DNA of 64,000 nt from Azolla caroliniana (lineage: Eukaryota > Plantae > Polypodiophyta), in assembly GCA_043228905.1 (NCBI GenBank), contig JBHGNT010000009.1, positions 13,020,001-13,084,000 of the forward strand, written 5' to 3'. Numbering within the stretch: the first letter of the stretch is position 1; the number at the start of each line of letters is the position of its first letter. Made by a program: the position numbers and the translations under genes. Below, piece by piece: positions 1 to 60,236 of the stretch. The notes under the pieces were generated by a model. It saw only the letters and a program-made list of their open reading frames with translations, was not told where the DNA came from and did not search any database.

Positions 1-164
1 GGTGCCAACCGGCACCTAATCAGAATCGGTCCGGATCTGGATCGGCATACCGATTCCGGTCCGTCCGTCCATATTAATACAATAATTACAATAGTTCCAA
101 AATAAACTATTCCTTTCACACTCCGGTCTGGACATCCTTAAGCCTTTTTGCCGGCCGGGTAACA
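1..164 (-). repeat. 3' LTR of element A (partial, R-family LTR)
   Basis: High similarity to 9932-10095, ending ...CCGGGTAACA on the plus strand. Confidence 0.93.
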
Positions 165-166
165 CA

Positions 167-206
167 TGGCACGCCCGTGGGACAGTACCTTGTACATCGA
201 ACCCAT
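167..206 (-). other. tRNA-Arg 3'-end-like motif with inserted hairpin at the PPT position (element A)
   Basis: Element sense ATGGGTTCGA-TGTACAAGGTACT-GTCCCACGGGCGTGCCA, 2 nt before the 3' LTR. No purine tract is present. Confidence 0.85.
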
Positions 207-218
207 TATCCGGCCCTG

Positions 219-3200
219 CTACTCTTCGTCTAAAATGTCCAGAATGCTTTGCTCCAGAATTTCCAATGGCTTGTAGTTGTTGCTGCTGTGGCTGCTGTTC
301 CGTTTGTGGCTACTGCGATGGCTGCTCCGTTTGTGCCTTCTCCGTTTGGGGCTGCTGCTCCGTTTGTCGCTCTTGCACCGGCATTTCCTTCGTTGTTTTG
401 TTCGCCGGAGTTGTTGCTGGCTGACCGACCCCAGCTTGGTCCCCGTGTGGTCCTTGTACCGGCGACGATTCCTCATCACTAAGGTTTATCGTTGCCGCTT
501 TCCTTGCTTTTTCTTCCCGAAGCCGGGACCGCTCATAGCTCTCAAACTGGATTTGAGCCTCCAGCCGATCGTCGTCCAGTTGAGCTATGAGCTGTCGGAC
601 CTGTACCAATTGTTCATCCACCATGGCTGTGAAATCTTCAACCAGCTCATCCCTTACGGCGGTGAAGTCCTTTGATGTCAGCGTATAACAGTCGTCACCC
701 TCCTTCCACTGGTTTTCCACATCCGCCCTGAGCAATTGGAGTTCCGCAGTATTCTGCACCCATTTCGTCCACCATCGCACAGAGCTCTCGTCAATCAAGC
801 GTTTGGTCTTAGTGAGCCATGCCTGGAGGATGCACTGGATCCATTCGATTCCCATCCGTGATTTGTTCTCCACGGCTTGTCTCTCCTCTTTCAATTGCTT
901 GATGATTCTGATCGTGTCTGCCTCCTGCTCCCTATAATGCGACAATTGACTTTGATAGGTTGTTTGCAACCTCTGTAACACCATTGTCGCCCTTTCCTTT
1001 TCTTTATGGTTCTGCTTGTGGAGCTCCATCCGGTCCATCGCCGCTTCCTCCAATAGCTTTGAATTCTTAGCTCGTTCGTCAATGAGTGCCGTTGTGGCCC
1101 TATCAACTTCTTGCCGGAGCTCGGCCATCCTTTCCTGCTGTTGCTTATACTCCGCCTCCAGTTGCTTGTAGTCCCGATGCAGATGATCAAAATCATTGGT
1201 CCTCTGCTTCAGCCTCTGGTTGATCTGCCGGCGCGCGCGGTCCTCCTGGTCCTTCTGTTGACGGAGTTCTTCCTTTAGCCTTTCGATTTCCGTCTATGCC
1301 ATCCGTCGCAGCTTGTCTTTCTCCTGCTGCAATTTCTCTTTTTCCTCCTTTAGCCGGTCATAAGCTTGATGTCCTTTACGTAGGTTTTCCTCTGCCCGGT
1401 GGAGGTTCTCAGTAGTCTTCTTTAATTCTTCTTCGGCCGCCTTCTTCAAGTCGCGTTCGCGGCTCCATAATGCTTCTTGTGTGGCAAGTTCGTCTCTTAA
1501 TTCGGCAAGCTCTTGGGCTTGCACCGCATCTTTCTCCGGGACAGTTTCTGTCTCCGGGGTCTTATTCGTATGTACATCCACCGGAGTCACCGGTGCTTGG
1601 ATATGTGTTGCGGTTAAGGCCATTTTGGCCATGTCTTCTGTTACCTGATCCAAGTCTTGTTCGAGGCACCGAATCCTTGACTGGGCCGTCTCTAGTTCAT
1701 TGGTTGTGACTAGCAACCGTTCCATCTGCGCTCGTTCTTCCGCCTCTACGTATCCGACTACTCCGGCAATTTGTTCTCCTATCCACCGAAGCCATTGGCT
1801 GCCGGTGCCCTGTTGTTGCGTCTGCACGGCGGGTTGGCCGATGGGTTCACTTGCTAGTGGCTGGTCCCGCCCTTCTGCGTTGAGCAGCAATTCCGGCTCT
1901 ACTTGTTGACCACTTTGCCGTTCAGGTTCCGGTTGTGTTTCGGTTGGCCACACTTGTTCTGCTTGTTCTTGGCTGGATGAGGAGGTTGGCATTTGTATAA
2001 CCGGCTCTTGAGTTACGGGGCTTGCCAGTGCTGCCTGTTGTACAGGGACTTCTGTGACCGGTTCCATCCGAACCGGTTCCGGTGCCTCCCTTGGCGTGGG
2101 ATTCTCAGTGTGGGTTGCGGGTGTTCCATCCTTCTGTGGGTCCGAACGCTTCACGGGTGATTCTACGGTCCTCTTCACCAGCCGCCGCTGGAGATGCTCC
2201 GTAGGCTCTTCCTTCGTTTCCTCCTCCTGAGTCTCGGCATTCATTCTTGCCACCAGGGTGTCCGTTTCTTGCTGCACCGGTTGGTGGAGTGGGCTCTTCA
2301 GGGGCCGTGCCGGTGTCTCCTCGTGCGTGTCCATCGGCTGCTTCCGGTTGGCGCGCTCCTTTGCCACCTTCTGTGCGTCGACCGTCTTCCCCTTAGTGGC
2401 CTTGGAGGCCAACAACTATTGCCGTTTTGAAGCAGGTTTTGGGGTGCCGTCCGTTGCTCTTCCCCATTTCTTGGTCTGGACGAGCTCGACAGGTGGCGCC
2501 AATAGGGTGAGCCATTGCTTCACCGCATGCCATATTTTCCGGCCTTCTTTGCCTTCCTTACCTCTTACGGTATCAATAGTCACGCACAATCCGTCGGCGA
2601 TCAGCATTGGCCAATCGACCTTGACCCCTTCGTACGTTGCGATAATCAAGCCTGCTCGGTTCTGAGGCTTAACGGGGGGTCGAGGGTATACGTGGCCGAA
2701 ATCATGGAGTACACGGGCAATTTCGCGGAATAACATATCTTCGCCGCCCTGTGTCCTGTAGCCCTTGCTGGCGAGAGAATACTCACCGAAATATTTGATG
2801 AGCTGCTCGGAGGTAGGATTGTCGATCGTGTAGATGCCCCGCTCCGGAAGGCCTGTTAACGCACAAATCGTTTCCTCCGTGATCAGCTCGGTGTCAATGT
2901 CTTTGATAATATTTTCGGCCTCCTTGTGTGGCGCCGCCTCCATGATCGTCAAGAAACCCTCCAGTCCGTGTTGCCGTAGCCATTTCTTGGCGGCTTCAGA
3001 CAGTGTTTGATAGTCCATCTCTGCGTCGAGGTCGGAGAGCGTTGGCAAAGTTTGACGGTGGAGAGAGTGTGAGAGAGAAAGTTCTGAGTGAGGGGGTTCT
3101 CTGTGCATGATCTCTCTTCGATTGATCTTCACACGTCTGTCTGCGTCTGTTCTCCTTGGTTCGCGAAAGAAGAAGGTCTCGATGCGGGGGGCGTTTTCTC

Positions 3201-3297
3201 TCTGCATCTTGGCGCCTTTTTCGAGCCTACGCATGTGCAGGTCGTGTACTATAATAGCATTTCGTGCCATGTGGCGGTGGTTTAATGCCCTATTCAT
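219..3297 (-). pseudogene. Extra ORF3 of element A: globular N-terminal domain, low-complexity linker, long coiled coil, acidic C-terminal motif
   Basis: ORFs 2416-3297, 1294-2415 and 310-1128 share one frame separated by in-frame stops. A frameshift leads to the C-terminus LEQSILDILDEE*. Homologous to 21263-23996. Confidence 0.85.
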
Positions 3298-3424
3298 AGC
3301 CTCCTCGTACCTTTTCGAAGTGCCTCTTTACTCCTTGTTTGCATGGTCGTTCCCACCACTCCTTTGCATGATTTCTTTGATTCGATTTTTTTTTTTTCTT
3401 TTTTTTTTGAAATTAATTGTGTGG

Positions 3425-6400
3425 TTAATTTTTCTCCGGTCCTGTCGGACCCTTACCTGAAACGCGCACCTTGCCAGCCTCTTGACGGTTTGCCGTCGTT
3501 TTGCTCTCCCCGGTTGCCGGCTCATGCTCCTCCTTACCGGCTTGGTGGTAGCCGTTTTCCTCACAGGTTGCCATCTTGGTTGGCCTGCCGGCGTTCGATT
3601 CGGTGTCGACCCTTCGTTCAAATGGGTTCTTGGGCATAGGTCCTTTGCATGGCTTTAGTCTAAATCCGTTGACCCATTTACCCAGCACCTTGCCGGCAAG
3701 TGTCCCTAACTGGTAAGACCCATTGAACCCGCGTGTGATCTAGTACGGTCCGGTCCATCTAAACTGTAGTTTGCCTGGCATTTTACCCATCCAGGTCTGG
3801 AACACTAGTACCGACTTGCCGATTTCAAACATCTTTTCGTTTCCTTTTCGGTGCCGATCTACAAACGCTTTCCGTCGCCGTTGTTCTAATTCCAGGTGCA
3901 TGATGCTCGCCAGTCGGTGTTCTTCTAGTTCACACAGAGCCTTTAATCGAATTGCTTCCGATTCCTTTTCATTAAGTTGTTCCCAAATCTAGATCCGTAA
4001 GCTCGGTACCTGGAACTCAACCGGCATGACTACCTCTAATCCGAATGCTAATCGGAACGGTGTGGTTTGGATGCTTATTTTGTAGGCTGTTTGGTAAGCC
4101 CAGAGTGCACTGTGTAGCTTCGTGTTCCAATCTGTCCGATTCTCATTGACGATCTTGCGCAGGATATTCTGTAGCGTTTTGTTTGTTGACTCAGCTAATC
4201 CGTTGGCTTGTGGGTAGTATGGGGTGCTCCATTTATGTACTACCGCATAAAATGACGTCAAGCTCTCCACTACCTATCCAAGAAAGTGCCCTCCTTGGTC
4301 GCTTATCAGCTCTATGGGGCATCCGTACCGGCACCAAATGTATTCGTATAAGAATTTTGCCGTCGACGCCGCGGTGTTGTCTCGTAGGGCTTTGGCTTCC
4401 ACCCATTTAGTGCAGTAGTCCGTCGCGACGATCACATACCGGTTGCCAGTTCTCATTGCCGGTGGTTTAAATGGTCCGAAAAAATCCAGTTCCCATTTCT
4501 GAAATGGTTCTAGCGGTAGTACTAGCTGGTGCGGCATCCTAGCTTGTTCCATTGGTTGGCCCATTGGCTGGCATAGATCACACTCTTTCGCGTACCGGAC
4601 TGCGTCTTTCAATGTAGTCGGCCACCATAGGCCACTTTGCCATATCTTCCTTGCCGTAGCATCCCCGGCATAATGGCCTCTGGCGACTCCGCAGTGTGCT
4701 TCCCATAGTATTACCTCTTTCTCGTCGTTGCGCACCACTCGTCACCATATACCATCCGCACCTTTGTGGTATAGCGTGTCCCGTAATAAACAAAAGTGCC
4801 GGCTTTGTACCGCCAGGCGTTTCCTCTCGTCCCGGTTCATCTCCTCCAGAAGCAATCTGGTGCTCAGAAATTGGTGCATATTTGTTAGCCACTTATCTTC
4901 TGGTGCCACCGTTTCATTTGTTGCCGTTTCCGCGGTGACTCAAAATAGCTCAGCATCCGGAAATTCGTCCGGTACTCCGTCGCCGGTTTCGCCGGAATCT
5001 AACCGGCTTAAATAATCTGCTACCGCATGTTGTATGCTGGGTCGGTGGAATATCTCGAATTTGAATTCCTGTAATAGCAAAGTCCACCGGGCCAACTTAC
5101 CAGTAAGTGACGCTTTGGACACTAGGTAGAGGAGTGCCGAATGATCTACATGGAAGGAAAACTTTCTTCCCAATAAATAATGCCTGAATTTTGTTACGCT
5201 GTAGATCATGCCTAAAGCTTCCCTTTCTGTGGTGGAATAATTTTGTTCGGCTTGGGATAACTTCCGGCTTGTGTAATATACGGGCCGGTACCATCTTGGC
5301 TCTGTAAGTTGTATCAACGCACTCCCGATTGCAATGTCAGACGCATCCACGAACACATGAAATTCCTTCGCCCAATCTGGGGGTTGCACTACCGGCGCTT
5401 GCGACAATAGAACTTTGAGTGCCCGGTACGCCTTGTCTTCGGTGTCGGTCCACTAGAACGGTGTTCGGTGTACCGCAGCATGCAGTGGTGTAGCTAGGTC
5501 CGCCAAATACCGGAGCATTCGGCTATGCCAACGGATTTGGCCTAAGAAACGGCTCAATGCCTTTGCCGTTGTTGGTGCCGGTGCCTCCAGGATTGCTTTT
5601 ACTTTGTCCGGATCCATGACAATGCCTTCCTTGCTCACAATGTGCCCTAGTAGCATTCCGCTGGACACGCCGAATACACACTTCGCCGGATTCAGGCTTA
5701 GCCGGTAAGTCCTACACTTTTCTAGACACAGTCGGAGGTGCTGAAGGTGGTCTCCTTCCCGGCTGTAAATGGCGAAGTCGTCGAGGAACACCTGCATGAA
5801 TGCCGGTATGAATTCTCCGAATATTTCCATGATGATCCTCTAGAACGTTGCCGGTGCCGTTTTTAGTCCGAACATCATCACTACGGCAACAAACACTCCT
5901 CATTCATTGACGAAAGCCGTTTTTTCTTGGTCATCGGGGTGCATCCGGATCTGGTTGTATCCGCTGAATCCGTCAAAAAAACTATATACCTCATGGCCGG
6001 CGACTGCGTCCAAAACTCCATTCGTAAATGGAAGTGGAAATGCATCAGTTACCGTTGCCGCATTAAGCTTCCGGTAGTCGACACATACTCTAATTTTGCC
6101 GTTTTACTTTGGTACGACTACTATCGCGCTCAGCCATGTAGATTTCTTTACGGGACGGATAAAGCCAACCCTCAGCAACTTGTCGATTTCCTCCTTCACT
6201 TTGGCGACGTAGTTTGGATTCATCCGGTACTGTCGCTGTGCTACCGGTTTGGCGTCTTTGCTCAAATGTATCTGATGTTGACATAGCTGAGGATCAAGCC
6301 CTCTCATATCCTCATAGGACCTGGCAAACACGTCCCCAAACTCTTTGAGAGTTGTAATCATCGCCGTTCTGTTCTCCGCAGTCATTTGCTTGGCTATCTG

Positions 6401-7677
6401 CATCGGTCTCGCCTCTTCCGTAGTTCCTAGATTTACCTCCTCTAGTTGGGATGCTTTAACCCTTTGTGATACGGCCATTTCTCTTTCCAGCGCTTCTTGT
6501 GCTTGCCGTAGCTCCCAGATCACTTCTTTATTTGGTTCTTCATCCGCTCCGTCTGGTGGGACTATGTATGGTGATATGGCTTCAGCTACGTCGATTTCGA
6601 ATAGAGGTACTATCTTCGGATTATCTTGCAAATATTGATCCACCTCTTCGTCTGCTAATCCGTCCAGCATATTGACACATTCGGCATATAGGGGTGTCAA
6701 TTCCTTCCCGGTACCCGTCTGTGGTTGTGTCGGTACCCGTACTTTTGCTTTTCCCCGCCGGAAGGTGATTATATTCTTCCTCCAGTTTTGTTAAATGTGC
6801 GGTGTTTTTAGCCACGGCCGCCCCAACAATAGCGGGTAAGCTCCTTGTGCTTGTAATTGTAGCACTACTGCTGAGATGCGAAATGTGTGGCCGCCGATTG
6901 TTACTTCCAAGTCTCGTATCAAGCCGGTCGGTCGCACTGAGGTTGTATCCGTCATCCGTAGCCAGAACGGGCATGGTTCCCACTCTTGGATTCCCAAGGT
7001 TGTGCATGTTCGGAGGCTAATCACAGTGATCCACCTCTTCGTCTGCTAATCCGTCCAGCATATTGACACATTCGGCATATAGGGGTGTCAATTCCTTCCC
7101 GGTACCCGTCTGTGGTTGTGTCGGTACCCGTACTTTTGCTTTTCCCCGCCGGAAGGTGATTATATTCTTCCTCCAGTTTTGTTAAATGTGCGGTGTTTTT
7201 AGCCACGGCCGCCCCAACAATAGCGGGTAAGCTCCTTGTGCTTGTAATTGTAGCACTACTGCTGAGATGCGAAATGTGTGGCCGCCGATTGTTACTTCCA
7301 AGTCTCGTATCAAGCCGGTCGGTCGCACTGAGCTTGTATCCGTCATCCGTAGCCAGAACGGGCATGGTTCCCACTCTTGGATTCCCAAGGTTGTGCATGT
7401 TCGGAGGCTAATCACATTGATGCCAGATCCTCCATCTATTACTGTTCCGGGTAACTCCTTTCCCTTCACGATGGCTGTGATGGTCGGACTGTTTGTGTCT
7501 ACCACCGCCAGTCCCTCCTCTGGATTTAAGAAGAATATTGATGCCGGTGGTGTTTCTCCTGCCGTCATGCCTGTCTTGAGTCCTTCTGTGAATCTAGGCA
7601 CTAGTTGCAGGAGCCGTCCTAATGGCAGCGTGATTTGGCACTCTTGCAATGCCTGCCATGTCGCATTTTCGGTCTGA
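3425..7677 (-). pseudogene. pol: pol of element A (protease, RT, RNase H, integrase)
   Basis: Protease VIDGGSGIN, RT VFLDDF, RNase H HVFVDAS..NYSTTEREAL..VDHSAL, integrase H-H-C-C, WELDFFGP, SDQG, PQANGLAE. Many stops and frameshifts. Confidence 0.95.
6636..7416. repeat. Tandem duplication, 391-bp period, in the protease/RT linker
   Basis: 6636-7025 is repeated at 7027-7416 almost identically, with ATTGAT-like microhomology at the junction. Confidence 0.95.
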
Positions 7678-9660
7678 CTGCTGTCGGCGAGCTCTTCGGT
7701 GTTCTCCTTTTGCTATGCAAGTTTTGCTACGTTTCGCTCATTTGCCTTTTTCACCCATTCCGTTGCCTGCTTCCGGATGGCCTCTTGTGTCTCCCATTCC
7801 GTCACCTTGCCCTTCGACCTTGTGGTAAGCTGTTGCAGGTCTGCGACTTCGGCGACTACCATGTTTACTGCCGGTCGCTTGTCATAGCTCTTTGCTGGAC
7901 ATTGATTACTATAATGTCCTTCTTGCCGGTAATAATAGCAATATGCTTTCCGAGTATTGCTGGATTCGGCATTGTTTCCTATACCCGGTGGAGGACCTGT
8001 GGTAACCGCGGGGCTTTGGTCTGGTTGGCTGCTTGAGGCGCCTTTTTCCGGTTCATGTGGGTGGTTCCCTTTTTTGAACTGCCATTTTTTATTAAAGTTC
8101 TTTTTGTTGCGGTACTCTTGACGGGGTTGGTCGTCATATCTCCCGTAATCTTCCCGTTGTTGGTGATACCGGGGGGAGTGATCCTGGTTGTAATGCTCGT
8201 ACCGTCTATTGTAATCTCGGTACCTGTCATATCTCTCGTACCGGTCATAGTTGTCTCGCCGATCGCCGTACCGGACATCCTGTGCCGGTCGATATCGCTC
8301 CTCTCGCCGCCAACGTTCGTCTTCTTCGTCACGACTGCTACATGGCTCGATTTGCCGGACTGGTGGTGCTTGCCGATTCAATAAGTTATATTCGCACCGG
8401 TCCATCGTGTGGGTCGTAGATTGGCAGAGTAAGCAGTGCGTTCGCATGGTGCACTCCAGTGCCAAGTGTCCGGAATTTTAGCAAGTCGTGCATTGGATTG
8501 CTTGCCGGAACCAGAGATCCTCATCAATTGGTAACGCTCGTTGGAGGGCTCCCATTGTTAGCCAAGAGCTCGTTTTCTCCATTTCTCTAACCCGGTCGAT
8601 GACTTGGTCGACGGTGCTTGTGCGAAAGTCGATGACCGTGCATACCGTTCATCGAGGTTCCCGGAGCGCGGCTAAGAATATAGCTCGTGTTTCTTCCTCC
8701 GGAGGTGTTCGGGTAAGCTGATTGTGCATCCGTTAAAACCGGATGACAAACTGCGGAATGCTCTCCCCAGGGTCCTGCCGGATGGTATAAAATAGGCCCA
8801 CCATTTCTCTCTGGTCCACCTCCTTCTAAAAGAAGTGCAAGAATTTATCTTTTAGGTCCGCAAAGGTGGTGATGGTGCTGGGGTCCTATGTCCGGTGCCA
8901 TCTGGCGGCCGGTCCTTCCAATGTAACGCCGAATTCGGCTATCTTAGATCGTTCCTCTTTAGCCGCGGTTAACTGTTGTGACACATGGTTCGCCTCCCAT
9001 GTTTGTTGAAATGCATGAACATGAGCCTTCGCGTCCGGGTCATCCCTATACTTGGAGTACTGGAATGGCATGTCGTCGTCCGGTGTCGGTACGCGGGCTA
9101 GCGGTGTCAATGGTCTTTCCTGCTGTTCCGTCGTCGTCAGAGGTCTTTGCCGGTCGTCCTTTCGTGTTGCCAGATCGACTTCCGGTGTCGGAGGTCTTTC
9201 TTTGTCTTCTTCTGTCTCCGGAGGTTGCTCCACGTCTAGTGCTAGGGGTTCCCGGTCTGACAACTCTGGTTCTGGTGTCGGTAATGTATCCAACTCCTTG
9301 TCCTCCGGTCCTCCTGGGGTGTCGTTACTGCTACGATAGTTCGTGTGCGCGCTGTAACCCCCTCCCGAATCCGATTCTAGCGCTGAAAATGCTTCGGATT
9401 CGCCATCTCTTCCGGCCAAGGCCTGGAGAAGGGATTCCGCTTCCCGGAGACTGCTTAAGCTGCTTCCTTCGTCCGGGTAGGCATTTTGTTGCAGACGGAG
9501 CGACTCCTCTGCCACTTTGCGGATCACTTTGGAAAATGATCGATCCGATCAAATTTCTTCCACTGCTTGCTGGAAAGCCTCTCTCCGCCTTTGCCGTTCA
9601 GCAAGTCTTCGTGCTCTCTCCGTTACCGGGTCGTCTGTTGGCCTGTTCACTGCGATTGTG
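7650..9660 (-). pseudogene. gag: gag of element A
   Basis: Capsid-like AHVHAFQQTWEAN..FGVTLEGPAARW and zinc knuckles (CLLCQSTTHTMDRC; CYYYRQEGHYSNQC). Interrupted by stops. Confidence 0.85.
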
Positions 9661-9666
9661 CAGGAA

Positions 9667-9678
9667 TCGTGGTCGCCA
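9667..9678 (-). promoter_or_regulatory. Primer-binding site, probably tRNA-Arg(UCG)
   Basis: TGGCGACCACGA lies 7 nt (CCGTTTT) after the 5' LTR. The tRNA assignment is from recalled tRNA-Arg 3' ends. Confidence 0.75.
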
Positions 9679-9685
9679 AAAACGG

Positions 9686-10095
9686 TGTTAAACCTAGGGC
9701 CGGACAACAGCCTAACACAGGGTGTCCACTTAAGACACTTCACCAAAGGGTGTTACGACAGGATGACTTACGACACAATGCTTAATTAGACCTTAATTGG
9801 TTACTTAGCAATACGTAGTATAGAACGGTAATCAATACTGAAAGGTTAAGGCAATAAGTTCTATTAATTATCCGCTGTCAATTACATTGTAACCGGGCCT
9901 TTATATAGGTCTCCGGTGCGAAGTACAAAACGGTGCCAACCGACACCTATTCGGAATCGGTCCGGATCCGGATCGGCATATCGATTCCGGTCCGTCCATC
10001 CATATTAATAAAATAATTACAACAATTCCCAAATAAACTATTCCTTTCACACTCTGGTCTGGACATCCTTAAGGCTTCTTGCCATCCGGGTAACA
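9686..10095 (-). repeat. 5' LTR of element A (R-family, 410 bp)
   Basis: TGTTA...TAACA inverted ends, a TATATAA box near 9901-9907 on the minus strand, and homologues at 29486 and 55955. Confidence 0.95.
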
Positions 10096-23996: not shown

Positions 23997-24000
23997 TGGG

Positions 24001-24041
24001 ATGGGTCCGACGTGCCATGGCACTGTCCTACAGGCTTGCTA
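24001..24041 (+). other. tRNA-Arg 3'-end-like motif with hairpin at the PPT position (element B, decayed)
   Basis: ATGGGTCCGA-CGTGCCATGGCACT-GTCCTACAGGCTTGCTA, 2 nt before the LTR start. Confidence 0.75.
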
Positions 24042-27172: not shown

Positions 27173-29947
27173 TGTTAATCCTAGGGCCAGACAACAGCCT
27201 AACACAGGGTGTCCACTTAAATAGTACAAGAGGGGGTAGATACATAGGGGTGTAAGCCCCCTCGAGCATTCATACTGGACACTCACTTACACCTCCTCGT
27301 ATCCATGCACATGCACACACGTGTGCATGTGTTCACATACGTATAGACTCATAATTACATTTATGCCCCCTACACATACACAACAACATCATCATAACAT
27401 TCGATCCTCACTCATCACACTTGACTCTCCGTACATCTCGTACGGGGTAACACAATATGGCACGCCCGTGGGAGAGTGCCTTGCACGTCGATCCCACATG
27501 CCTTGATGATGATATTTCTTCGATCGGGACTTCCATCGGTCCTTTCAACGATCGACTCCCTCGATCGGAGTGCTTGACTCGAACATCTTTGTCGGTCAGC
27601 AAATCTTTGACACGAACATTCTCGTTTTGTCGGCTTAGGAACTTCGTCATGGGTCCAAAATCATGTTGTGTATATGTATGTTCTTCCTTTGTTTTGAGTG
27701 TGTGTGAGTAGTCTTGGGGATTTTCAAAATTTTGGTGGTGCCCTCTTGTTTTTTTAAAATTTTGATATGTACCCTTATGTTGATGAAATTTTCTCGTTAC
27801 GTCGTCATAATTGTTTTTTTTTTTATTTAAAAATTTTGTTCGTGCCCCTATTCTCTTTCCCTCTCTTTTTATATATTATTATTATTACATATTTTCCTCC
27901 TATTCTCCTAGTGGGAAACAATGTTCTTCTTTCTTTTTTTCTTCTCGTCGTTTCTCTGTTTCTCTCTTCTATACTTCTTCTTCTCTCTATTTCTCCATCT
28001 TCTTTTCTCGTTTTTCTTTCTACTTCCACCATCACTATGTCTAATGTGCTCGCTGTTTTTGTTTGTCCGGTTCAGTCGTTGTCTTGGCCTTCGTTGACTA
28101 TGTAAACGCCTCCATCAGCGGCCTTCTCCCTTTGGCGGGATGTTATCTCTCTCCATTTAACGCTTTCGATTGTCCGGCCATTTCGGTTGCATTTCGGCCA
28201 CTTCTACGCATTTTAGCCGCCCTGACCGCAATCGGCTGCTTTCCGGTCGCCGCCCCTATTCTGCCGTCATCATCATTGTTCCGACCACTCTTTGATTGCT
28301 TATTTGATCCGGCCATTGTGTTCATTTGTTTGGCCTGTTTGGTTGTCTCTTCTAGTCTGTTCCGGCCATTCGTCCTCCCGACTCTTTGTGTCTGTTTGTG
28401 TCGATGTCATTGTTCTGGCCATCGAGCCGTCTTAGTCTGAACCGTTCAGGCTAACTTTGTTAGATGTGTCTCTGTATCCAACCGTCTCTGTCGTTTCTTC
28501 GTCGTCCGGCTCCGTAGCTTTTCGGTGTCAATGTTCCATCGTCTGGCCGTTGCCGTTGCTATGGCTGTGCATTTCGGCTATTGTCTCCGTCGCTCTTTGA
28601 CTCTGTCTGGCCGTCGTCCCGCTATTTGTCCATCTCCATCTTCGTTGTTGTCTGGCATCGTCCGCTCCGGCCGCCTCCGTTCCGGCGCTTTTCGGCATCG
28701 GTGTCGTCGTTCCTTTGGAACCGGACATTCTGTTCATTTGTCCGGCCCATTCCGGCCAGTCTGTGTCTGGCACCATTGCTTTAGGGACGGGGGCCGCCTT
28801 TGTTCAGACGCTTGTCCGACCGCGACTGCAACTGTTCCAAACGTGCTTTGTCATTGTTTCGGTCGTCACTCTTGTTGCCGCCGCTTTGGGCGTTGTCACC
28901 ATATTCCGGCCAGTGCCTCCGACGTTTGGTGCCTCCGACTGTGTCTTTCTAGTGCTGTTGGTTTCTCTGGTTGTCAATGTCTTGTCTGCATCTGCATCTC
29001 CTTCTCCGCCTTTTATGACCCTTCCGTGTTAACCAACTCTGGTTCTTGTTCTGATTCTAGTTCCGACTCTCTCCGCGTTGTTTCTTCTGGAACCATTGCC
29101 CGTGCATTCTCAACACATCCAACCGGTCTTCGCTCCACACACTGCAACTTTCTCCGCACTCTCCTGGTGGGCTTCTCTTTCCGGTCGTGCTGGCACCGGT
29201 TCCCTTTGCGTTGTTGTTTGTCCAGTCGTGCATCTTGCACCACGCTTTTGAGAACACGCACATTGTCGCTAACTGCTTTCGGAAACACGCACATGGACAC
29301 TAAGCGCAACCTCGCACAAACATTGTTGCCATTCATGCATTCCTCCATACACTTCCTCCAACATCTTCACCGTCATTTTCGCGTTTCACCATTTCTTACA
29401 CTTAGTTGCTATGGCTTGCACATCCGCGTATCATTCTTTGACTCCGTCTCCAAAGGGGGTTCGCCTTCGTAGTTGCCAAAAGGTGTGTTAATCCTAGGGC
29501 CGGACAATAGCCTAACACAGGGTGTCCACTTAAGACACTTCACCAAAGGGTGGTACGGCAGAATGACTTAGGGCACAACGCTTAATTAGACCTTAATTGG
29601 TTACTTAGCAATTCGTAATTAACATGCCTAAGATATAACAATGAATACAGAACGGTAATCAAAACTGGAAGATTAAGACAATAAGCTCTATTAATTATCC
29701 GCTTCTGATTACATTATAACCGGGCCTTTATATAGGTCTCCGGTGTGAAATACAAAATGGTGCCACCCGGCACCTTTACGGGATCGGTTCGGATCCGGAT
29801 CGGCATACCGATTCCGGTCCGTCCGTCCACATCTTCTCATATATTAATATCTATATTAAGATTACTAATTACAACTGTTCCCGAATAAACTATTCCTTTT
29901 CACACTTTGATTTGGACCTCCTTAAGCCTTCTTGCCAGCCGGTAACA
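27173..29947 (-). mobile_element. Non-autonomous LTR element with discordant LTRs (5' LTR R-family 29486-29947; 3' LTR S/R chimera 27173-27452)
   Basis: TSD TAGAT/TAGAC. PBS TGGCAACTACGAAGG at 29464-29478. The internal region is non-coding and homologous to 40972-43094. Confidence 0.9.
27458..27497 (-). other. tRNA-Arg 3'-end-like motif with hairpin at the PPT position
   Basis: GTGGGATCGA-CGTGCAAGGCACT-CTCCCACGGGCGTGCCA, 5 nt before the 3' LTR. Confidence 0.85.
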
Positions 29948-31126
29948 TAGACAAGGAAGAAAAGAGTAATGAAAATGGAATTATAGATTCAGAGCCACAA
30001 TATGAAGAAGAATTTATCTCACTTCCAGGTACATGTTGATAGCATATTACTTCGCGTGACAATATTACTTCACATGACAATAATGTACATGTGTATTAAT
30101 ACATAGGGCATGATGAAGAGCCCCAAGTTGAAACCGGGATCATCCCAAGCAATAATGACGATGTAACAGTAGGTAAACATTTGTCCCTTAACCTTAATCA
30201 TTTGGCTAGATGCCTTCCCTTTTTCAGAATGTGAATTGATATTGTTATTGGATCACTTTACTGTTATTTAGGAGTAGAAGAGCATGTAGATTCACAAATA
30301 CCATCAGATGATTCAGGTAGTTTATGGAGCAATCTTGATTATTCTAGCTCAGATGCTAACACACATGAGGAATGTGAGATCAGTCAAAAAGAGGAGCTGG
30401 AGTGTGAAAAGCCGGAGGTGACAAGCAACTTTGCAATGGAGTCTACAGAGAATGTGAAAATGACCCAAGGAGAGAATGAGGTGTGTGTCCAAAACACCAC
30501 AAGCAGCCTTAATCTAGGGCAAGGATGTAACATTAAGTAGACCCCTGCAGCTACCCAAGAAGGAGAGTGTGGTACTACAAATGAGGTGTCTGTCCAAAAT
30601 ACTGGAAGTAGGTTGCACTTGGAGCACTCTAATAATGTGGTAGTGGTGTCTACCCAAGGAGAGGAACATGTTTGTACTCCTAATAATGTGGTAGTGGAAA
30701 CTACCCAAGATGAGGAACATGTTAGTACTCCTAATAATGTGGTAGAGGAGCCAGAAAAGTTGAAGAATGACACGTCCAATGACCTCCAGCAGATTTCTGG
30801 TAAGACTATCGACCGCATCTTCTTGGAAGTGTGTGCATCTCAGGTAGTTGCAACAGAGCACATTGTTCCCTCCAGGTTGGCTTCACCCTCCGATGATGAG
30901 TTGCCACTAAGTAGTTTACTACCTCGTGGTTTTAAGATGAAGAAGGGTGTGAAATCTGAGAAGAATGAAACCAAAAATAGGCGCATTACAAGATCTAGAA
31001 AAAACTAAAACCAAAGTTTATTGTATATTGATCGTTTTAATTTATAGGAATGCTAAGTCATTGATTACCATCATCTTGACATAGTTTTAATTTACTTGTT
31101 ATGCACACATGTCATGGTGACACAAC

Positions 31127-31930
31127 TTTAGTACTAACGATAAGTTTATTGTATCTAGGTTGTTGTTTGTAATTGATAGGAATGTTAAGTTATTGTTTAC
31201 CCTCATCGTGACATTGTGTTGGTTTACTTGTTATGCAAACATGTGACAATGAGAAGATGAGTGATGTGTGATGAGTGCCACTACTTTGATACATATGTCT
31301 ACGGATGCAAACTCTTAACATAGCTTTAGTACTAACGATAAGTTTATTGTATCTAGGTTGTTGTCTGTAATTGATAGGAATGTTAAGTTATTGTTTACCC
31401 TCATCGTGACATTGTGTTGGTTTACTTGTTATGCAAACATGTGACAATGAGAAGATGAGTGATGTGTGATGAGTGCCACTACTTTGATACATATGTCTAC
31501 GGATGCAAACTCTTAACATAGCTTTAGTACTAACGATAAGTTTATTGTATCTAGGTTGTTGTCTGTAATTGATAGGAATGTTAAGTTATTGTTTACCCTC
31601 ATCGTGACATTGTGTTGGTTTACTTGTTATGCAAACATGTGACAATGAGAAGATGAGTGATGTGTGATGAGTGTCACTACTTTGATACATATGTCTACGG
31701 ATGCAAACTCTTAACATAGCTTTAGTACTAACGATAAGTTTATTGTATCTAGGTTGTTGTCTGTAATTGATAGGAATGTTAAGTTATTGTTTACCCTCAT
31801 CATGACATTGTTCTGGTTTACTTGTTATGCAAACATGTGACAATGAGAAGGTGAGTGATGCGTGATGAGTGACACTACTTTGATACATATTTCTACGTTA
31901 GCAAACTCTTAACACAGATTTAGTACTAAC
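31127..31930. repeat. Tandem repeat, 4 x 198 bp
   Basis: The GTAC of TTTAGTACTAAC recurs at 31131, 31329, 31527, 31725 and 31923. Confidence 0.95.
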
Positions 31931-32230
31931 TTGACATGCATTCTACTAACTTTGATACATATGAACTCCTAAAGAGTTATAAGCACACATATGATACATA
32001 TGAACTACTAAAGAGTTATAGGCACACATATGAACTCTTAACTTTGATACTAACGTAGGCTCCAAGCACTAGACAATTCATGTAAAAGAAACATACATAT
32101 CTAAACCAAAGAGGAATATTGTCAGAAAACCCAAGATAAATATGAAAACCGGTTTTGATATATTTCCTTTCACGTGTAAGTCAGAGTTTGAGTACATGCA
32201 AAAGTTACATTAGACACAACACTTGCCATT

Positions 32231-35200
32231 CTAGGCATTAAAGAGGGAGACCTCCCCCAATATGTGTTCGTGTATCCCTTTGGGGACTTTGTAGATTGTG
32301 TTGTATCCCTTAACCTTGTGCTTTGCTTGAGTCATTTTGAACTTGATTGCGATAATGGCATCAACATAGATAATTGCGGTGGGTGCATCTTTTAACAATG
32401 CATATGTGTTCTTGCATTGTGGCAACTTTGCATAGTAGTTGCCATACACGACAGACTCACCAACATTGAACATGTTGCCCCAACCACCCCTCACGACTTC
32501 TTCCAATATTGTATTTCCTTGCTTGCACACCACAACATAGTAGTCTTCAAAATCTTCACTCTGAGGAGATTTGAGCACTGCAAAATGATCTCCAATTTCC
32601 AATAATGTTGCCAAGTCCTCACACTGGTTGTAGTAGACAATATTGTCTGAATGTTCGTTTTCTTGGATATTCACGCTGTCTTCTATCTCTAGCTTCTGTA
32701 GCTTCCATGGCTCCACAATTGATAGATTGGTGCATTCATCCCAAGCTTCATCTAAACACATGGAACAAAAGCAAGATAAACTGCGGAATAACAATTGTGT
32801 TGTGTCCTTGCGACTAAACCCTAAAACACAATGGGTCTTGCACGTCCCTTTCACGGTTTTACAACTGTATGATTTACTCCTATCCACCTCATTAGCACGA
32901 ACCTCAATAAAAAATCTATTCTTACCATCATTTGACATCTTCCATGTGAGCCACTCCACAACATCATGTGCATTTTGTAGCTTAGCACCATTATTATCCA
33001 ACTGCTCCGATGTAAGAGCACGCTTGATCACAACCCCCGCGCCATGGTGCTCTCCCTTTCCATGTCTAGACCCGATGTAGTTCCATTGCATCCTAATGTT
33101 TGTCAATGAGAAGTATTTGGGTGTTTTGCATGATAGTTAGCCAACAAACATAATTAATTGCATGACTTAAACCATAATTATTACTTATACATGAGTGAAC
33201 AATACTAATATTTGAATCAATACAAATGAACAAGAGAGGATAACACTAAGTTATTGATTAGTACTAATGCACGAGAGAAGATAATACTAAGTTGGAAATT
33301 AAAACTAAAAAATGAGAGAGGGAAGTGGTAAGTTATTAATTAGTACTGATGCACGAGAAAGGATAGTACTAAGTTGGAAATTAGTACTAACAAACGAGAG
33401 AGGGGAGTGGTAAGTTACTAATCAGTACTAATGCATGACAGAGAACAACCATAAGTTATAAGTTGGTCGTAATGTACAGAGTTGGAGAGTACTAAGTTAT
33501 TAATTAGTACTAATGCATGACAAAGGACAGTCCTAAGTTATAAGTTGGTCTTAATGAACAAAGTTGGATAGTTCTAAGTTTGTAATTAGTACTAATGCAT
33601 GACAATGGACAGTCCATAGTACTAAGTTGGTCTTAATGAACAAAGTAGGACAATTCTAAGTTTGTAATTAGTACGAATGCATGATAGTGGACAGTTCATA
33701 GTACTAAGTTGGTCTTAATGATCAAAGTAGGACAGTACTAAGTTAATGGATAGTACTAATGAACAAATTAGTACTAACGAACAAAGTTGAATATAGCTAA
33801 GATATGAATTGGTACAAACGTTACTAAGAGGGGGTAATCCTAAGTTATAATTTAGTACTAGTGCATGACAGTGGACAGTCCTAAGTTATAACTTGGTCTT
33901 AAAGAACAAAGTTGGATAGTTCTAAGTGATTAATTAGTACTAATGCATGACAGTGGACAATCCTGAGTTATAAATTGGTCTTAATGAACAAAGTTGGACA
34001 GTACTAAATTAATGGATAGTACTAATGAACATGGTTGGATAGTACTAAGTTAATAATTAGTATTAATGAGAGAGAACAATCCTAAGTTATAAATTAGTAC
34101 TAATGAACAAAGTTGATTATAGCTAAGTTACTCATTAGTACAAAGATTACTGAGAGGGGGCAATCCTAAGTTATAATTTAGTACTTGTACATGTGCACCT
34201 TTGGGGACAATACTATATTGTAAATTACAGATACATTACAAGGCCTCAACCTTAATTAGTACTTGTACACGTAGGATGACAATACTAACCTGTAAGTTAA
34301 GTTTACTTAGCATTGTTATTACCATAATCAGTACTAGTGAATCTAGGTGCATGTCATTTAGTATTTTATACAAACATTTCTAAGTACTATGGAGTATTAC
34401 CAAAATAAACTTCCATTTATAAGTACCAAACATATGGATTATTTCCTCACCTTGCAATGAAGTAGAAGGACCAGGCCGCCTTAAATTGCGAGGCAACACC
34501 ATCAGACCAAACCCAATGCCGATTAAAGTTAACATCCAAGGACAAATAATCTGCATGGTGAAGCTTAAAACAATGTTGAACAAATAGCGTATCGTGTTTT
34601 TTATCATCTGAAATGTAGAATATTGATTTCTTATGTAACTCACCGTCTTTTCTCCAAGAGCAAATATGTACAAGTATTGTACATTGGTCATTATACCAAT
34701 GCATTGATTGAACCTCATTTTGAACTTTAAACGTATAGTTCTTTGCAAAGCCAATAATGGATACTATAACATCTGGTGGTAAGTTATTTATACATTCCTT
34801 GAACTGTGAATTTTGCCAATAATTCCTAAAGTTATGTGGAATGAACTCCTCGAGTTGGTTCTTAAACTCTGAGACAAGGGTAGCAACACATGTCTCCTTA
34901 TATACTTCCTTGATACGCTTACTAACAAGACCCTTACCTATATTTTCTGTCACATACTCTAAATATTTCCATTTCACAATATGACAATTATCTACATCAA
35001 GCTCTTGTCTACAAAATGGTGGTTGTGGGCAAACTTTACATGTTCTTAGAAGACATGTACGATTATGCCACTCAGATGATGGTTGTTTTTCACAAACAAA
35101 AGACCTCCATATCTCAGAAAACCGATGCGTAAGTCATGTTTCGTGCAGTACATCTATTATCACTCCCATTTGGTCTACATACCTCACAAGTGCAAACACA

Positions 35201-40506: not shown

Positions 40507-43500
40507 TGTTACCTCGTACGAGATGTACGGAGAGTCAAGTGTGATGAGCGAGGGTCGAATGTTATCATAATGTTGTGTATGTGTAGGGGGCATAAATGTA
40601 ATTGTGAGTCGATACATATGTGAACACATGCACACGTGTGTGCATGTGGATGGATACGAGGAGGTATGAGTGAGTGTCCAGTATGAATGCTCTAGGGGGC
40701 TTACACCCCTTTGTATCTACCCCCTCTTGTACTATTTAACCTCCTTATGGGGAATGAATGAAAAATGAATCATTTCTCTCTATCTATCTCTCTTTTCATC
40801 TCTCTCTCTCTCTCTTCCCTCCCCTTAATGTTGAACCCACCCCGCAATGCTTCTCAATGCACATAATCTCTCTCGCCATCAATCCCATACTCTCCATCAT
40901 CATCATAACCACCATGTCTATCTTTATCATGATTATCATCGTCCTTAACCCTAGCCCTAAAACATACAACACCTTTTGGCGACCACTAAGGCGACCCCCC
41001 TTTGGAGACGGAGTTGAAGAATGATACGCGACAATGTGAGGCATAGTGATGATGATATGTAAGAGATGTCCGGGTAATGATGGCGATATGCAGCAAAAGG
41101 CGGAAGAAATCAGAAATGGAAGATTGACAAGATTGACTGCTGCACAATTCTACAACAAATTAATCTCTATATGTGAATATTTTGTGTGGTCTGTTTTTGC
41201 CCTAAATGTCCGAGAAATGTTGGCCAAGATGTACAAAAACGGTGTCAATGCATGAGTGGAAGTTGCAAAACAAGTTGCAAAAGGATGGCGTTACATGAGT
41301 GTGCGAGAATGGAAATGACAATGTGCAAATGTGCGGTTAGCAGCAATGTGTGTGTGTTCCAAGGAGACTGCGGAGGAAGACGCAATGTGTGGAGCGTGGG
41401 CCAGCAAGATGTGCGGTACCGGAATGGGACGTGTTCACAATTTCCAGTTTCCAGAGAAGCAACGCGGAAAAAGTTGGAACCAAAACAAGAGTTGGTTGGC
41501 ACCGAAGCGGCTGTAATGGCCGGGCGGCCGTCAGAGTAGACAGAGCCGAAACAGCAACAGTGACGCCGAAAAGCGACGAACGAAGAGACAACCGTCAGAT
41601 ATCAACGGCTGACAACCGGATGACGACTGAACAGACCGGCCACGCGACTGCAGACCGGCCGGACAGGGCCGACGAAAATGAGAGAGGCTTCAGGAACGGT
41701 CATCACCAACCGACAGCAGCCGGAGCGGCCGGAGGGCCGGACAAGGTCAGGGAAGCAAACAGGCCGCCAAGATGACGGACGGTGTCGGACGACGACGAAA
41801 CCGACAGAGACGGTGATGGAGTCCGCAACGGAGGCAGCCGGAGCAACCGAGAGCCGAGGAGCGGCCAAAGCGACCGGAATAGCCGACCAGTGGCCGGAGT
41901 GGCCAGATAGGCCCGGACAGAGACGGAACCGGCCAGAGCGATGGCGGTGGCTGAACAATCGACGACCGGATCGGAGATGACGCTGAAACGAAGGGCCAAA
42001 CAGACACACACAACAACAAACGAGGCATAAATGGACAGAGACGACAACCGGTCGGAAGGAGATACACCAATATGTAGATGGAGACAACCGCGGATGCAGG
42101 ACCAGAAGGACAAGCAATCAAAGAGCGGTCGGAACAACGATGATGACGGCAAAACAAGGGCAGCCACCGGAAAGGAGCCGGTTGCAGTCGAGGCGGCTGA
42201 AATGCACAGAAATGGCCGAAATGCAGCCGGAATGGCCAGAGTGGCTGAAATGCGCCCAGAAAGGCTGGACAACTGACGCCAAAACAACGGGCCGAATAGT
42301 ATCGGCGACAGATAGAGGAGCGGCGACAACCAACGGTTACGAGTGGCCCGTAGACGACAGAGACAAAGAAATGGAGATAGTGACGGAGAGACCATGGAAT
42401 GAGAGAAGGAACTAGAACACACTGAGAAGAAAGTAGAGAGTATAGAAGAGAAGGCAGAGAAGGCTTAAGACAGAGGATGGAGAAAAATGAGCAAGGAAGA
42501 GGAAGACAAATACAGAAGAACAACAGAAGAAGAGAGGAGAGACAGGAAGGCAAGTAGAGAAGCGGGAAAAGAAAACAGAAAGAAAGAGGAAGAAGAGGCA
42601 AGAAGAGGCAAGAAAAAGAAAAAGACAAAAACGGAAAAAAAGAGGGAAAAAGAGAACGATAAGGGGCATTCGAGGAGTTTTGAAAACTTGAGGGCATTCG
42701 AAGAATTTCGAAAAACATGATGGCATTGAAAAAATAAAATAAAAATTTTAAATTTTAAATTTAAAAATCAAAGGGCACATACAAAATTTTGAAAACTCAT
42801 CCACCTAAAGAAATGGACGTGATCGACCATACACAACTCAAAATAAAGGAAGAACACACACACATACAACATATTTTTGACGACCCAAATGATTTTACGA
42901 AGTTCGTAAGTCGACAGAACGAGAATGTTCGTGTCGCGGAAGATTTGCTGACCGACAAATGTGTTTGAGTCAAGCATTCCGATCGAGGGAGTCGATCGTT
43001 GAAAGGACCGATGGAAGTTCCGGTCAAAGAAATATCATCATCAAGGCATGTGGGATCGACGTGCAAGGCACTTTCCCACGGGCGTGCCATATTGTGTTAC
43101 CTCGTACGAGATGTACGGAGAGTCAAGTGTGATGAGCGAGGGTCGAATGTTATCATAATGTTGTGTATGTGTAGGGGGCATAAATGTAATTGTGAGTCGA
43201 TACATATGTGAACACATGCACACGTGTGTGCATGTGGATGGATACGAGGAGGTATGAGTGAGTGTCCAGTATGAATGCTCGAGGGGGCTTACACCCCTTT
43301 GTATCTACCCCCTCTTGTACTATTTAACCCCCTTATGGGGAATGAATGAAAAATGAATCATTTCTCTCTATCTATCTCTCTTTTCATCTCTCTCTCTCTC
43401 TCTTCCCTCCCCTTAACGTTGAACCCCCTTGGGAGGGGGGTGGAGCCATTCTAGGCACCACCCCCTACCCCGCAATGCTTCTCAATGCACATGATCTCTC

Positions 43501-43599
43501 TCGCCATCAATCCCATACTCTCCATCATCATCATAACCACCATGTCTATCTTTATCATGATTATCATCGTCCTTAACCCTAGCCCTAAAACATACAACA
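40507..43599 (+). mobile_element. Complete non-autonomous LTR element (S family), non-coding
   Basis: LTRs 40507-40971 and 43095-43599 are nearly identical apart from a 40-bp indel. Perfect TSD ATGAG. PBS TGGCGACCACTAAGG at 40977. Confidence 0.95.
43050..43089 (+). other. tRNA-Arg 3'-end-like motif with hairpin at the PPT position (S element)
   Basis: GTGGGATCGA-CGTGCAAGGCACT-TTCCCACGGGCGTGCCA, 5 nt before the 3' LTR. Confidence 0.85.
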
Positions 43600-46717: not shown

Positions 46718-47289
46718 TTTATTAAATGAATGTTTTGTGTCTCTCTCTCTACAACCAACCGATCACACAGAGAGGAAATGTGGTAGTTATAGGTGCACCC
46801 TATTTTTGGGGTGCACCTTTTCATATCATATAGCTTTTCGTCTTATTATTTATTTTTTCTATTTACTTATTCTAAACTAATTAGTTTATTACAACATGCC
46901 GCTTTCTCCATTTAACTGATCATTTTCCAATCTTTCCTACAATAACTTCATTTCTTGTTTGGACTCTAACCAATTGTTGGAGATTTTGTACGCCACCTTC
47001 CAGATGCTCTTGATCCGTTCCGTCATGTCCTTTGCCGCTCTTCGTACTATGGAGAATTCCTTGTGCATTTCGGCTAGTGCCATATTGACTGCCGACGTCT
47101 GCATATCCCCATATTTAGATCGTCCTGGCTTCTTCGCCTTTAGCTTCAGTCGTAATGCTTTCTTAACTAGCTCTCTATCGGCATATTCTACTACTAGCCG
47201 GGAAGCTACCAACGTATTCTGAAATCCAAGACACTCTACTAGCTCGTTGTCGAATACTAGTGTATAATGCCCATATTCACACTCTCTCT

Positions 47290-59382: not shown

Positions 59383-60236
59383 TGACAAGAACTACACACT
59401 CCAATGAACACCACTCAGCCACAACCGAGCTTAGAATCAAACACAGAAAAACGGGGAATGAAAAACACGACACAAAGGAGAGAAGAGAACAAAGGATGTT
59501 TAACGTGGAAAACCCTAAGAGGGAAAAACCACGGGAGTCCACAGAATCCAAACTATCACTATATCACAATGATTACAACAGTGAGCTCACGGCAGCAACG
59601 ACCTCGCGCTCTCGATCTTCGCCACAGGCGGCGGTTACAACAGAGGCAACGACCTCTTCCTCTCTCTTTTTGTCTCTGTGTACACTGTACACTTTTAGTC
59701 TTGCACCAACAAGAATGACAACAACCACAACATTCTCTGTTTGCCCTAAGTCATATTTATACTAATATGACTTTTGGGCTATTTACAAATATAGCCCCGA
59801 TGGGCTCTCACCATATTTACGAATATGTCCCTTCATCCGGTGAGCACTCCTCACCGGTCCTGCATCATCCAACGCTTGCTGGGCAGTTGTGATCCGGTTC
59901 TCACCGGGTCTTCCGTTGCCGGGCACTTGTAATCCGGTTCTCACTGGGTCTTCACCATCCAGCTCTTGTCGGGTACTCTTCATTCGGTTCTCATCGGGTC
60001 TTCACCATCCGGCTCTTGCCGGGTACTTCTCATCCGGTTCTCATTGGGTCTTCCGTTGCCGGGTACTCTTCACTTCCCATCCGGAGAGACCTGTTTCCTA
60101 ACAAACTCCCCCTTCACTCCAGCATGGGATGTCTTACTAGTCCAATCCGCTTCCGGCATGCATCCAGCTTGTCGGGTATCAGTACTTTGGTCAGCATATC
60201 TGATCCGTTCACGGCCGTGTGGATCTTCGTCAGCGC
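59383..60236 (-). mobile_element. 3' end of another Copia (RNase H end, PPT, full 3' LTR 59383-60103)
   Basis: KIHTAVNGSDMLTK..GL and PPT GAGTGAAGGGGGAG. The TG..CA LTR is homologous to 53860-54569 and carries internal CCGGTTCTCA repeats. Confidence 0.88.

Follow-up and report, generated by a model that had tools for sequence, protein, structure and literature searches.

Elements carrying a tRNA-like module

We analysed a 64,000-nt stretch of DNA (the window) holding five LTR retrotransposon copies of interest, named A to E. A module of 41 nt is found at 5/5 of these sites, on the coding strand and 0-5 nt ahead of the U3 edge of the LTR. The main features are listed below by window position; bit scores are those of a covariance model of the module.

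1..164, minus strand: 3′ LTR of element A, truncated where the window begins, 91% identical to 9932-10095; its U3 edge TGTTACC is at 164
166..165, minus strand: 2-nt spacer TG of element A
167..207, minus strand: module of element A, with a tRNA-Arg(UCU)-like 5′ arm, a hairpin GTAC/GTAC and 18 nt ending in CCA; 62 bits
313..3327, minus strand: ORF3 remains of element A in three in-frame pieces, the end (..DILDEE, stop) lying 25 nt before the module
3992..9548, minus strand: gag (zf-CCHC), PR, RT, RNase H and INT of element A, decayed
9663..9678, minus strand: 5′ primer binding site (PBS) of element A, TGGCGACCACGATTCC, 7 nt past the LTR end
9686..10095, minus strand: 5′ LTR of element A
24000..24041, plus strand: module of element B, decayed, with four changes in the 3′ arm (CTA for CCA); 45 bits
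24044 onwards, plus strand: LTR of element B, separated from the module by GG
27458..27498, minus strand: module of element C, a member of the E family; the spacer TATTG leads to the LTR, which occupies 27452 and below; 67 bits
37643..37683, minus strand: module of element D, 3′ arm with three transitions, abutting the LTR start TGTTTTGCC; ORF3 end (..ILNIMEDN, stop) upstream; 57 bits
40502..40506: target-site duplication ATGAG of element E
40507..40971, plus strand: 5′ LTR of element E
40977..40986, plus strand: 5′ PBS of element E, TGGCGACCAC, behind the spacer CCTTT
43049..43089, plus strand: module of element E, 68 bits; the spacer TATTG comes next, at 43090-43094
43095..43599, plus strand: 3′ LTR of element E, which shares 98.5% identity with its 5′ counterpart; ATGAG recurs at 43600-43604

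The five copies can be aligned end to end, and the covariance model gives exactly five matches in the window, at 45-68 bits (E 1e-11 to 1e-18), with a runner-up at 10 bits. The 16-nt core TGGCACGCCCGTGGGA occurs in the window at four sites with ≤3 mismatches, versus 0.29 expected by chance. The 40-41 nt motif that the initial annotation had described at five sites is thus borne out by the alignment and the covariance model. Its assignment to four LTR families was revised; the elements instead form one lineage, with ORF3 and the module common to all. Between CCA and TGTT, A and B have a spacer of 2 nt and C and E one of 5 nt; in D there is none (0 nt). The conserved 3′ end of ORF3 (..ILEED-stop-like) is 10-25 nt upstream of the module in A, B and D, and the RNase H of element B is encoded on the plus strand, ahead of the module. 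Because the coding genes share its strand and ORF3 ends just upstream, the module stands in the sense strand at the place of a polypurine tract (PPT). The orientation proposed at first therefore stands, on the strand of gag-pol and RNase H and the position of the ORF3 end. ARAGORN found no tRNA gene in the window; the module comprises only positions 49-76 of a tRNA plus an insert, with no cloverleaf carrying an internal promoter. No Rfam family was assigned to the module at gathering and E-value thresholds, and a scan of viral contigs for the module gave 0 matches.

We then investigated the sequence immediately before the 3′ LTR. The lack of a PPT there, already stated in the initial annotation, was upheld: the longest purine run within 20 nt before the LTR is 3-4 in 45 module copies, and runs at module sites are ≤4. 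Three other ends in the window that had been taken as normal (56670, 60103 and 60864) have purine runs of 6, 10 and 5, respectively. At least two of the three (56670 and 60103) are Ty1/copia 3′ ends and therefore control for another superfamily. We also examined whether intact members carry a PPT, and the intact element of contig L127 (L numbers denote loci outside the window) has none, with the module instead. A purine-rich GGAGGAAGA, 10-25 nt upstream, was considered as the true PPT and rejected; it encodes the acidic ORF3 end, is missing in several families and would put the module within the LTR, which the 5′ LTRs exclude. As a separate observation, TCCCACAGGCGTG at a copia 3′ end with a normal PPT (56690-56702, minus strand) matches the module 3′ arm at 12/13 positions. 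It lies directly ahead of the copia PPT, within the pol end (..GWTDSLPQA, stop), by chance or through shared history; the sister copia copy at 60103 is less similar to the module 3′ arm.

Element E is non-autonomous and 3.1 kb long, with LTRs of the form TGTTACC...ACAACA. In contigs of four public DNA runs, its empty site is found, with 40501 joined to 43600, in further copies of the element that hosts E. The near identity of its LTRs, the 5-bp duplication and the empty site elsewhere indicate that E transposed recently without a PPT. In element A, the ORF3 remains have no Pfam match, and gag-pol contains a 391-nt tandem duplication (6636-7425, 99% identical). A chimeric element on the minus strand (27217-29947) joins an A-like 5′ LTR (about 29490-29947) to an E-type 3′ LTR; its interior consists of a decayed PBS, TGGCAACTAC, and about 2 kb of internal sequence, then the module.

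Autonomous elements of 10 kb with open gag-pol and ORF3 are found on two contigs, L126 and L127. On one strand, L127 carries the PBS TGGCGACCACGATTCC, gag-pol, ORF3, the module, TG, a 372-nt LTR and the PBS again, and the LTR has a TATA box, CCTATAAAAGG, on the sense strand. Its open gag-pol (1926 aa) contains the Pfam domains Retrotrans_gag, zf-CCHC, RVT_1, RT_RNaseH and rve in this order, and the Pfam scan found in it neither a chromodomain nor a second (archaeal-type) RNase H. Its ORF3 is open over 1057 aa and ends in LLDILEED (stop). L126 shows the same layout across two periods. These contigs indicate an autonomous partner that is intact and PPT-less. The ORF3 of the clade, 1050-1135 aa long, belongs to no Pfam family and has the same conserved end (L036:68-3397, minus strand; window 313-3327, minus strand); its middle is long, charged and probably coiled-coil. 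Among the matches found, ORF3 homologues occur only on plant-associated metagenome contigs.

Anatomy, conservation and relatives of the module

The module begins with positions 49-58 of tRNA-Arg(UCU) (GTGGGTTCGA), which cover one T-stem strand and the first part of the T-loop. An insert of 13 nt comes next, and positions 59-76, CCA included, complete the module; C66 is absent. We scanned metagenome contigs with a pattern in which the T-loop could hold 1-16 nt and one C could be present or absent. The 24-nt class of hits corresponds to tRNA-Arg(UCU) genes, as identified by ARAGORN, and the 36-nt class corresponds to the module, almost all of it from one plant-associated assembly series. The tRNA identity given in the initial annotation was confirmed against real genes from the same samples, less one C. 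One of these, L093, is a tRNA-Arg(TCT) gene whose upstream flank is rich in A and T; it comes from a sample shared with many module copies and does not encode CCA. Since CCA is added to tRNA post-transcriptionally, the module copies a mature tRNA.

Comparison of 23 distinct copies shows the insert folding into a stem of 4 bp capped by a loop of 3 nt, the stems being GTGC/GCAC, GTAC/GTAC, GGGC/GCCC, GGAC/GTCC and AGGC/GCCT. In these copies, 94.6% of the stem cells are paired, three of the four pairs have changed on both sides, and the covariation score was reached by 0/500 shuffles. Judged by this pattern of change, selection on the insert acts on its hairpin structure and not on its sequence. 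The T-stem-like helix is paired in 88% of cells and shows no covariation, its first pair being broken in 11/23 copies. From the hairpin to the CCA end, the same copies have a constant 18 nt with zero indels. A pseudoknot between insert and tail (GGCAC:GUGCC) was dismissed, its covariation being nil, as was an acceptor-like stem formed with the upstream flank, which came from a chance Rfam alignment in E and is not kept in other families. The stability of the predicted folds is nothing unusual (z -1.2 to +1.1). We also noticed that the 3′ part of the insert, AAGGCACT(T) (43063-43071 in the window, and in other copies), equals positions 21-29 of tRNA-Arg(UCU), that is, the 3′ strand of the D-stem and the start of the anticodon stem. 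This likeness, with a post hoc chance of about 0.01, may be a trace of template switching when the module originated.

The covariance model, which was built from the 23 distinct copies, retrieved 47 hairpin-type copies from 44 sources. CCA is intact in 43/47 of them, and the spacer between CCA and LTR is 0-8 nt, mostly 2 nt (TG, GG, AG or CG), with lengths of 5 nt in the E family and, in a single copy, 8 nt. Copies outside the window come from DNA contigs; no RNA run contained the element, so that RNA reads gave no LTR polarity. Most metagenome copies were retrieved with a pattern that fixes the arms, and the unbiased ones are those of the window, L001, L124, L126 and L127; L001 and L124, which both carry the module, and the long contigs L126 and L127 were retrieved through ORF3 homology, without the motif pattern. 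Conservation was compared with that of the flanks in 19 family representatives, as the initial annotation had advised. Identity is 81% over the module and 91% over the final 18 nt of it, versus 29% for the 40 nt upstream and 31% for LTR positions 9-40, both at chance level. In many contigs of other copies, the likeness to E ends exactly at 43049, the first base of the module. The arms are thus kept in sequence and the insert in shape, a pattern expected if the arms were held by an outside partner.

We then investigated the affiliation of the module-bearing elements. They share with Ty3/gypsy (Metaviridae) direct TG..CA LTRs with a 5-bp target-site duplication (E), the gene order gag-PR-RT-RNase H-INT (A and L127) and a PBS behind the 5′ LTR; a PPT before the 3′ LTR is the trait they lack. 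The absence of a chromodomain, the single RNase H and a large ORF (1057-1135 aa) after pol are OTA/Athila-like traits (PMC6317226). We tentatively regard the module bearers as a non-chromovirus Ty3/gypsy clade together with the non-autonomous elements that it mobilises. Its nearest named relatives are liverwort elements with 43-48% identity. Ranked by RT-RH-INT identity to L127, the informative relatives are as follows.

L128, 62%: a 5′ piece resembling the tRNA, a hairpin of 6-7 bp with unrelated sequence, 17 nt with CCA, AG, LTR
L132, 58%: tRNA positions about 40-61, an unrelated 7-bp hairpin, 17 nt ending in CCA, G, TGTTAC..
L130, 50%: module absent, weak purine stretch only
L129 (Riccia sorocarpa), 48%: normal PPT, AAAAAGGGGA, 4 nt before the LTR

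The lineages of L128 and L132 were missed by the covariance model and spotted by eye at the LTR edge. In L128, where a pair of LTRs fixes the edge, the 17-nt tRNA 3′ end has C66 and two CpG-type transitions. The hairpins of L128 and L132 differ from that of the main lineage in sequence, length and insertion point. The module copies align beside the tRNA gene, and three lineages thus keep one plan, in which a 5′ tRNA piece is followed by a hairpin of structural character, then by 17-18 nt that include CCA, and finally by the LTR. The more distant relatives use a PPT.

Primer binding sites behind the 5′ LTR

A PBS beginning with TGGCGACCAC is located 5-7 nt past the 5′ LTR in A, E, L001 and L127. 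The initial annotation had reported an ordinary 5′ PBS in three module-bearing elements, A and the chimera among them. This was confirmed in A (TGGCGACCAC at 9669-9678, minus strand) and in E (40977-40986), and in the chimera the site, at about 29470, is decayed. No tRNA matching TGGCGACCAC was found among the 115 tRNAs of the fetched loci. A paper on HERV9 gives an 18-mer with the same start as TGGCGACCAC, for which the Arg/Trp label is disputed, and the supplements of PMC6317226 contain no PBS sequences.

In L029, L047 and L080, the 5′ PBS is instead TGGCACGCCC, flush with the LTR and matching tRNA-Arg(UCU), and the 5′ PBS of L026 has 11 nt complementary to the same tRNA. In some families, tRNA-Arg(UCU) is therefore matched at both ends. 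In L049 (193-240), the 5′ PBS is perfectly complementary to tRNA-Arg(UCU) over 34 nt. The match begins at position 43, reaches CCA and includes C66; it extends well beyond position 58, at which copying of the primer normally stops. L098 contains a tandem array (1-1200; also 1328-1356 and 1866-1894) of an LTR of about 475 nt and a whole copy of tRNA-Arg(UCU) with CCA. On the sense strand of the element, the order is LTR, ATT, the complete tRNA in antisense, 1-2 nt, GG, LTR. The array resembles a mini-element, or else a junction of two LTRs at which a fully read-through primer was retained. The read-through copies in L049 and L098 thus indicate that tRNA-Arg(UCU) is used as a primer in the clade and that the enzyme reads past position 58.

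The PBSs of L128 (1568-1590, TGGCGACTCCGC..) and L132 (104-125, TGGCGATCCTGCGGG) are unlike both TGGCGACCAC and TGGCACGCCC; that of L128 resembles tRNA-Arg(ACG). If all 5′ PBS tRNAs were arginine tRNAs, co-packaging of Arg isoacceptors would be conceivable. The module stays constant while the 5′ PBS switches tRNA, and its role is therefore independent of pairing with the PBS.

Candidate routes of plus-strand initiation

The edge of an LTR is set by the start of plus-strand DNA, give or take a few nucleotides trimmed by integrase, and a 2-nt spacer is the usual integrase trim. To our knowledge, plus-strand priming from a PPT is treated as universal in retroviruses and LTR retrotransposons. In the elements described here, the PPT is replaced by a tRNA-derived module. 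The module is probably the plus-strand start site, because it is conserved, lies 0-8 nt from the LTR edge and occurs in transposing elements that have no PPT. A host tRNA is a plausible but by no means assured plus-strand primer. The best explanation that we can offer, held tentatively, is that a module built out of the 3′ half of mature tRNA-Arg(UCU) has taken the place of the PPT, with priming by a host tRNA. Host tRNAs might then prime both strands, a possibility that we hold with some doubt, through an inverted second tRNA-Arg(UCU) site on minus-strand DNA that would make the two LTR edges symmetrical.

In such a scheme, RNase H would remove the template RNA, and the minus-strand DNA copy of the module would serve as an additional PBS in inverted orientation. 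A tRNA-Arg(UCU) would pair with this copy through its 3′ end, its freed T-arm strand would pair past the hairpin, and reverse transcriptase would extend the CCA end into U3. The tRNA would be removed as at the other end, and integrase would trim the short spacer. Priming by a host tRNA would explain the tRNA sequence, the CCA, the retained 5′ arm and the free spacer, but it does not explain the missing C66 and the hairpin. The C66 gap, present in all main-lineage copies, would interrupt the pairing with the tRNA after 10 bp and counts against a host primer. Moreover, sister 5′ PBSs work with 10-11 matching nt, so that pairing alone fails to explain 27 tRNA-like nt and a hairpin. A measured RNase H cut would also agree with the constant distance of 17-18 nt that separates the hairpin from CCA.

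Such a cut is what a second, rather unlikely reading proposes, with the element's own RNA as the primer. Reverse transcriptase would pause at the hairpin and RNase H would cut after CCA, leaving 17-18 nt of RNA to prime, in mimicry of the m1A58 stall that positions removal of a tRNA primer. The spacing between the polymerase and RNase H sites of retroviral reverse transcriptases is about 17-18 nt. This would suit a hairpin conserved in structure alone and a constant hairpin-CCA spacing (18 nt in 23 copies, 17 nt in the two other lineages), and the absent C66 would be harmless. However, the 17-18 nt figure is known from retroviral enzymes and may not be that of the enzyme of this clade, and a hairpin of 4 bp is a weak pause site. 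The retention of tRNA sequence and CCA across lineages of 58-62% identity would be left unexplained, as would the retained tRNA 5′ piece beyond the hairpin. The primer would also be a GC-rich hybrid of mixed sequence, for which we know of no RNase H resistance. Priming by a host tRNA and by RNA in cis could be combined.

It is improbable, in our judgement, that the module acts as a tRNA mimic at the RNA level (in packaging, nuclear export, cell-to-cell mobility, stability or RNA circularisation via the PBS), with the plus strand primed by an unrecognised means. The T-stem-like helix (88% paired) and the single-stranded CCA tail in predicted folds would be consistent with mimicry, and in families with the PBS TGGCACGCCC the tail is complementary to it over 10 nt; but this complementarity is missing in A, E, L127, L128 and L132, and the first T-stem pair is the one broken in 11/23 copies. 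The module is internal in the transcript and not 3′-terminal, it always abuts the LTR edge, which is set by the plus-strand start, and no other primer candidate is found nearby.

We consider it very improbable that the module is a functionless relic, for example of tRNA read-through or of recombination during reverse transcription. The read-through copies of L049 and L098 show that material for such a relic exists in the clade, but flanks at chance beside a module conserved at 81-91%, the compensatory changes of the hairpin, the retention of the module in non-autonomous derivatives and the architecture common to three lineages all argue against it, and the decayed copies in B and D show what neutral decay looks like. 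Least credible of all is that, in mis-oriented or nested elements, an ordinary 5′ PBS was taken from the wrong strand: the opposite strand does read as an LTR end plus PBS, the LTR ends being inverted repeats, but for coding elements this is refuted by gag-pol and ORF3 on the module strand (A, B, L001, L126, L127, L128 and L132), a distinct PBS lies behind the 5′ LTR, the TATA box CCTATAAAAGG is in the sense strand, and element E has its own target-site duplication.

We then compared the arrangement with known systems. Like a PPT, the module lies directly before U3, would define the left end of the LTR and is followed by a spacer trimmed by integrase. Unlike a PPT, it has no purine run and consists of a tRNA 3′ end with CCA and a hairpin, and its primer may be a host tRNA rather than an RNase H-resistant remnant of the genome. 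Tags at the 3′ end of genomes that resemble tRNA are known from the tRNA-like structures (TLS) of plant viruses and the Mauriceville retroplasmid. The likeness to these genomic tags is a CCA-ended, tRNA-like piece tied to the start of replication. However, the module is not at the 3′ terminus of the RNA, since U3-R follows, and no 5′ acceptor strand is conserved upstream, so that there is no stem that could be aminoacylated.

Minus-strand priming by tRNAs with extended contacts is known from the HIV-1 PAS, the avian U5-TpsiC interaction and the Ty1 boxes, and the PBS of Ty3 is bipartite (PMC5371799). Read in antisense, the module has the same layout as these sites: 17 nt of PBS come first, then a short stem-loop, then a stretch complementary to the T-arm strand. 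However, it is at the opposite end of the element and inverted, and tRNA binding would therefore be possible only as minus-strand DNA. Self-priming in Tf1/Sushi and Tcn1/TAR (PMC6317226) would be comparable if the element's own RNA replaced the usual primer, with RNase H making the primer end. Tf1 self-priming, however, concerns the minus strand and the transcript 5′ end, whereas the module would serve the plus strand and the elements of the window retain a tRNA PBS. Self-complementarity of the Tf1 type is not found in A, E and L127, in which the PBS TGGCGACCAC.. and the module tail GGGCGTGCCA are non-complementary; the tail is complementary to the element's own PBS only in the L029/L080/L049 families. 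The Helenus TRIMs are likewise LTR elements containing tRNA-derived sequence, but their tRNA-like sequence is inside the LTR and probably a promoter; they have both a PBS and a PPT of the normal kind, and no priming role was found (PMC10886601).

The initial annotation had named no earlier description of the arrangement. In agreement with this, our full-text literature search turned up no published description of a tRNA 3′ end replacing the PPT; a survey of plant LTR elements covers PBS types and not the module arrangement, and the Retand paper has no bearing on the module. The arrangement points to an undescribed route of plus-strand initiation. A clade that transposes without a PPT shows that the plus-strand primer is exchangeable, and it offers a natural system for the definition of primer ends, for tRNA priming on DNA and for distance measurement by RT/RNase H. 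It is also relevant to the long-standing proposal that replication starts are marked by tRNA-like tags. As annotation tools search for a PPT, such elements will be mis-scored.

Further repeats were seen in the window. The copia fragment into which element E is inserted lies between direct repeats of 180 nt (39000-39175 and 46718-46900) with 94% identity. These repeats start with TGTTGTAATAAAC; as they have no CA end and are not followed by a PBS, they are probably not the LTRs of this copia. A tandem array at 31120-32013 has a period of 198 nt in 4 copies (77-99% identical), and another at 33192-34193 has a period of 41 nt in about 25 copies (60-86% identical).
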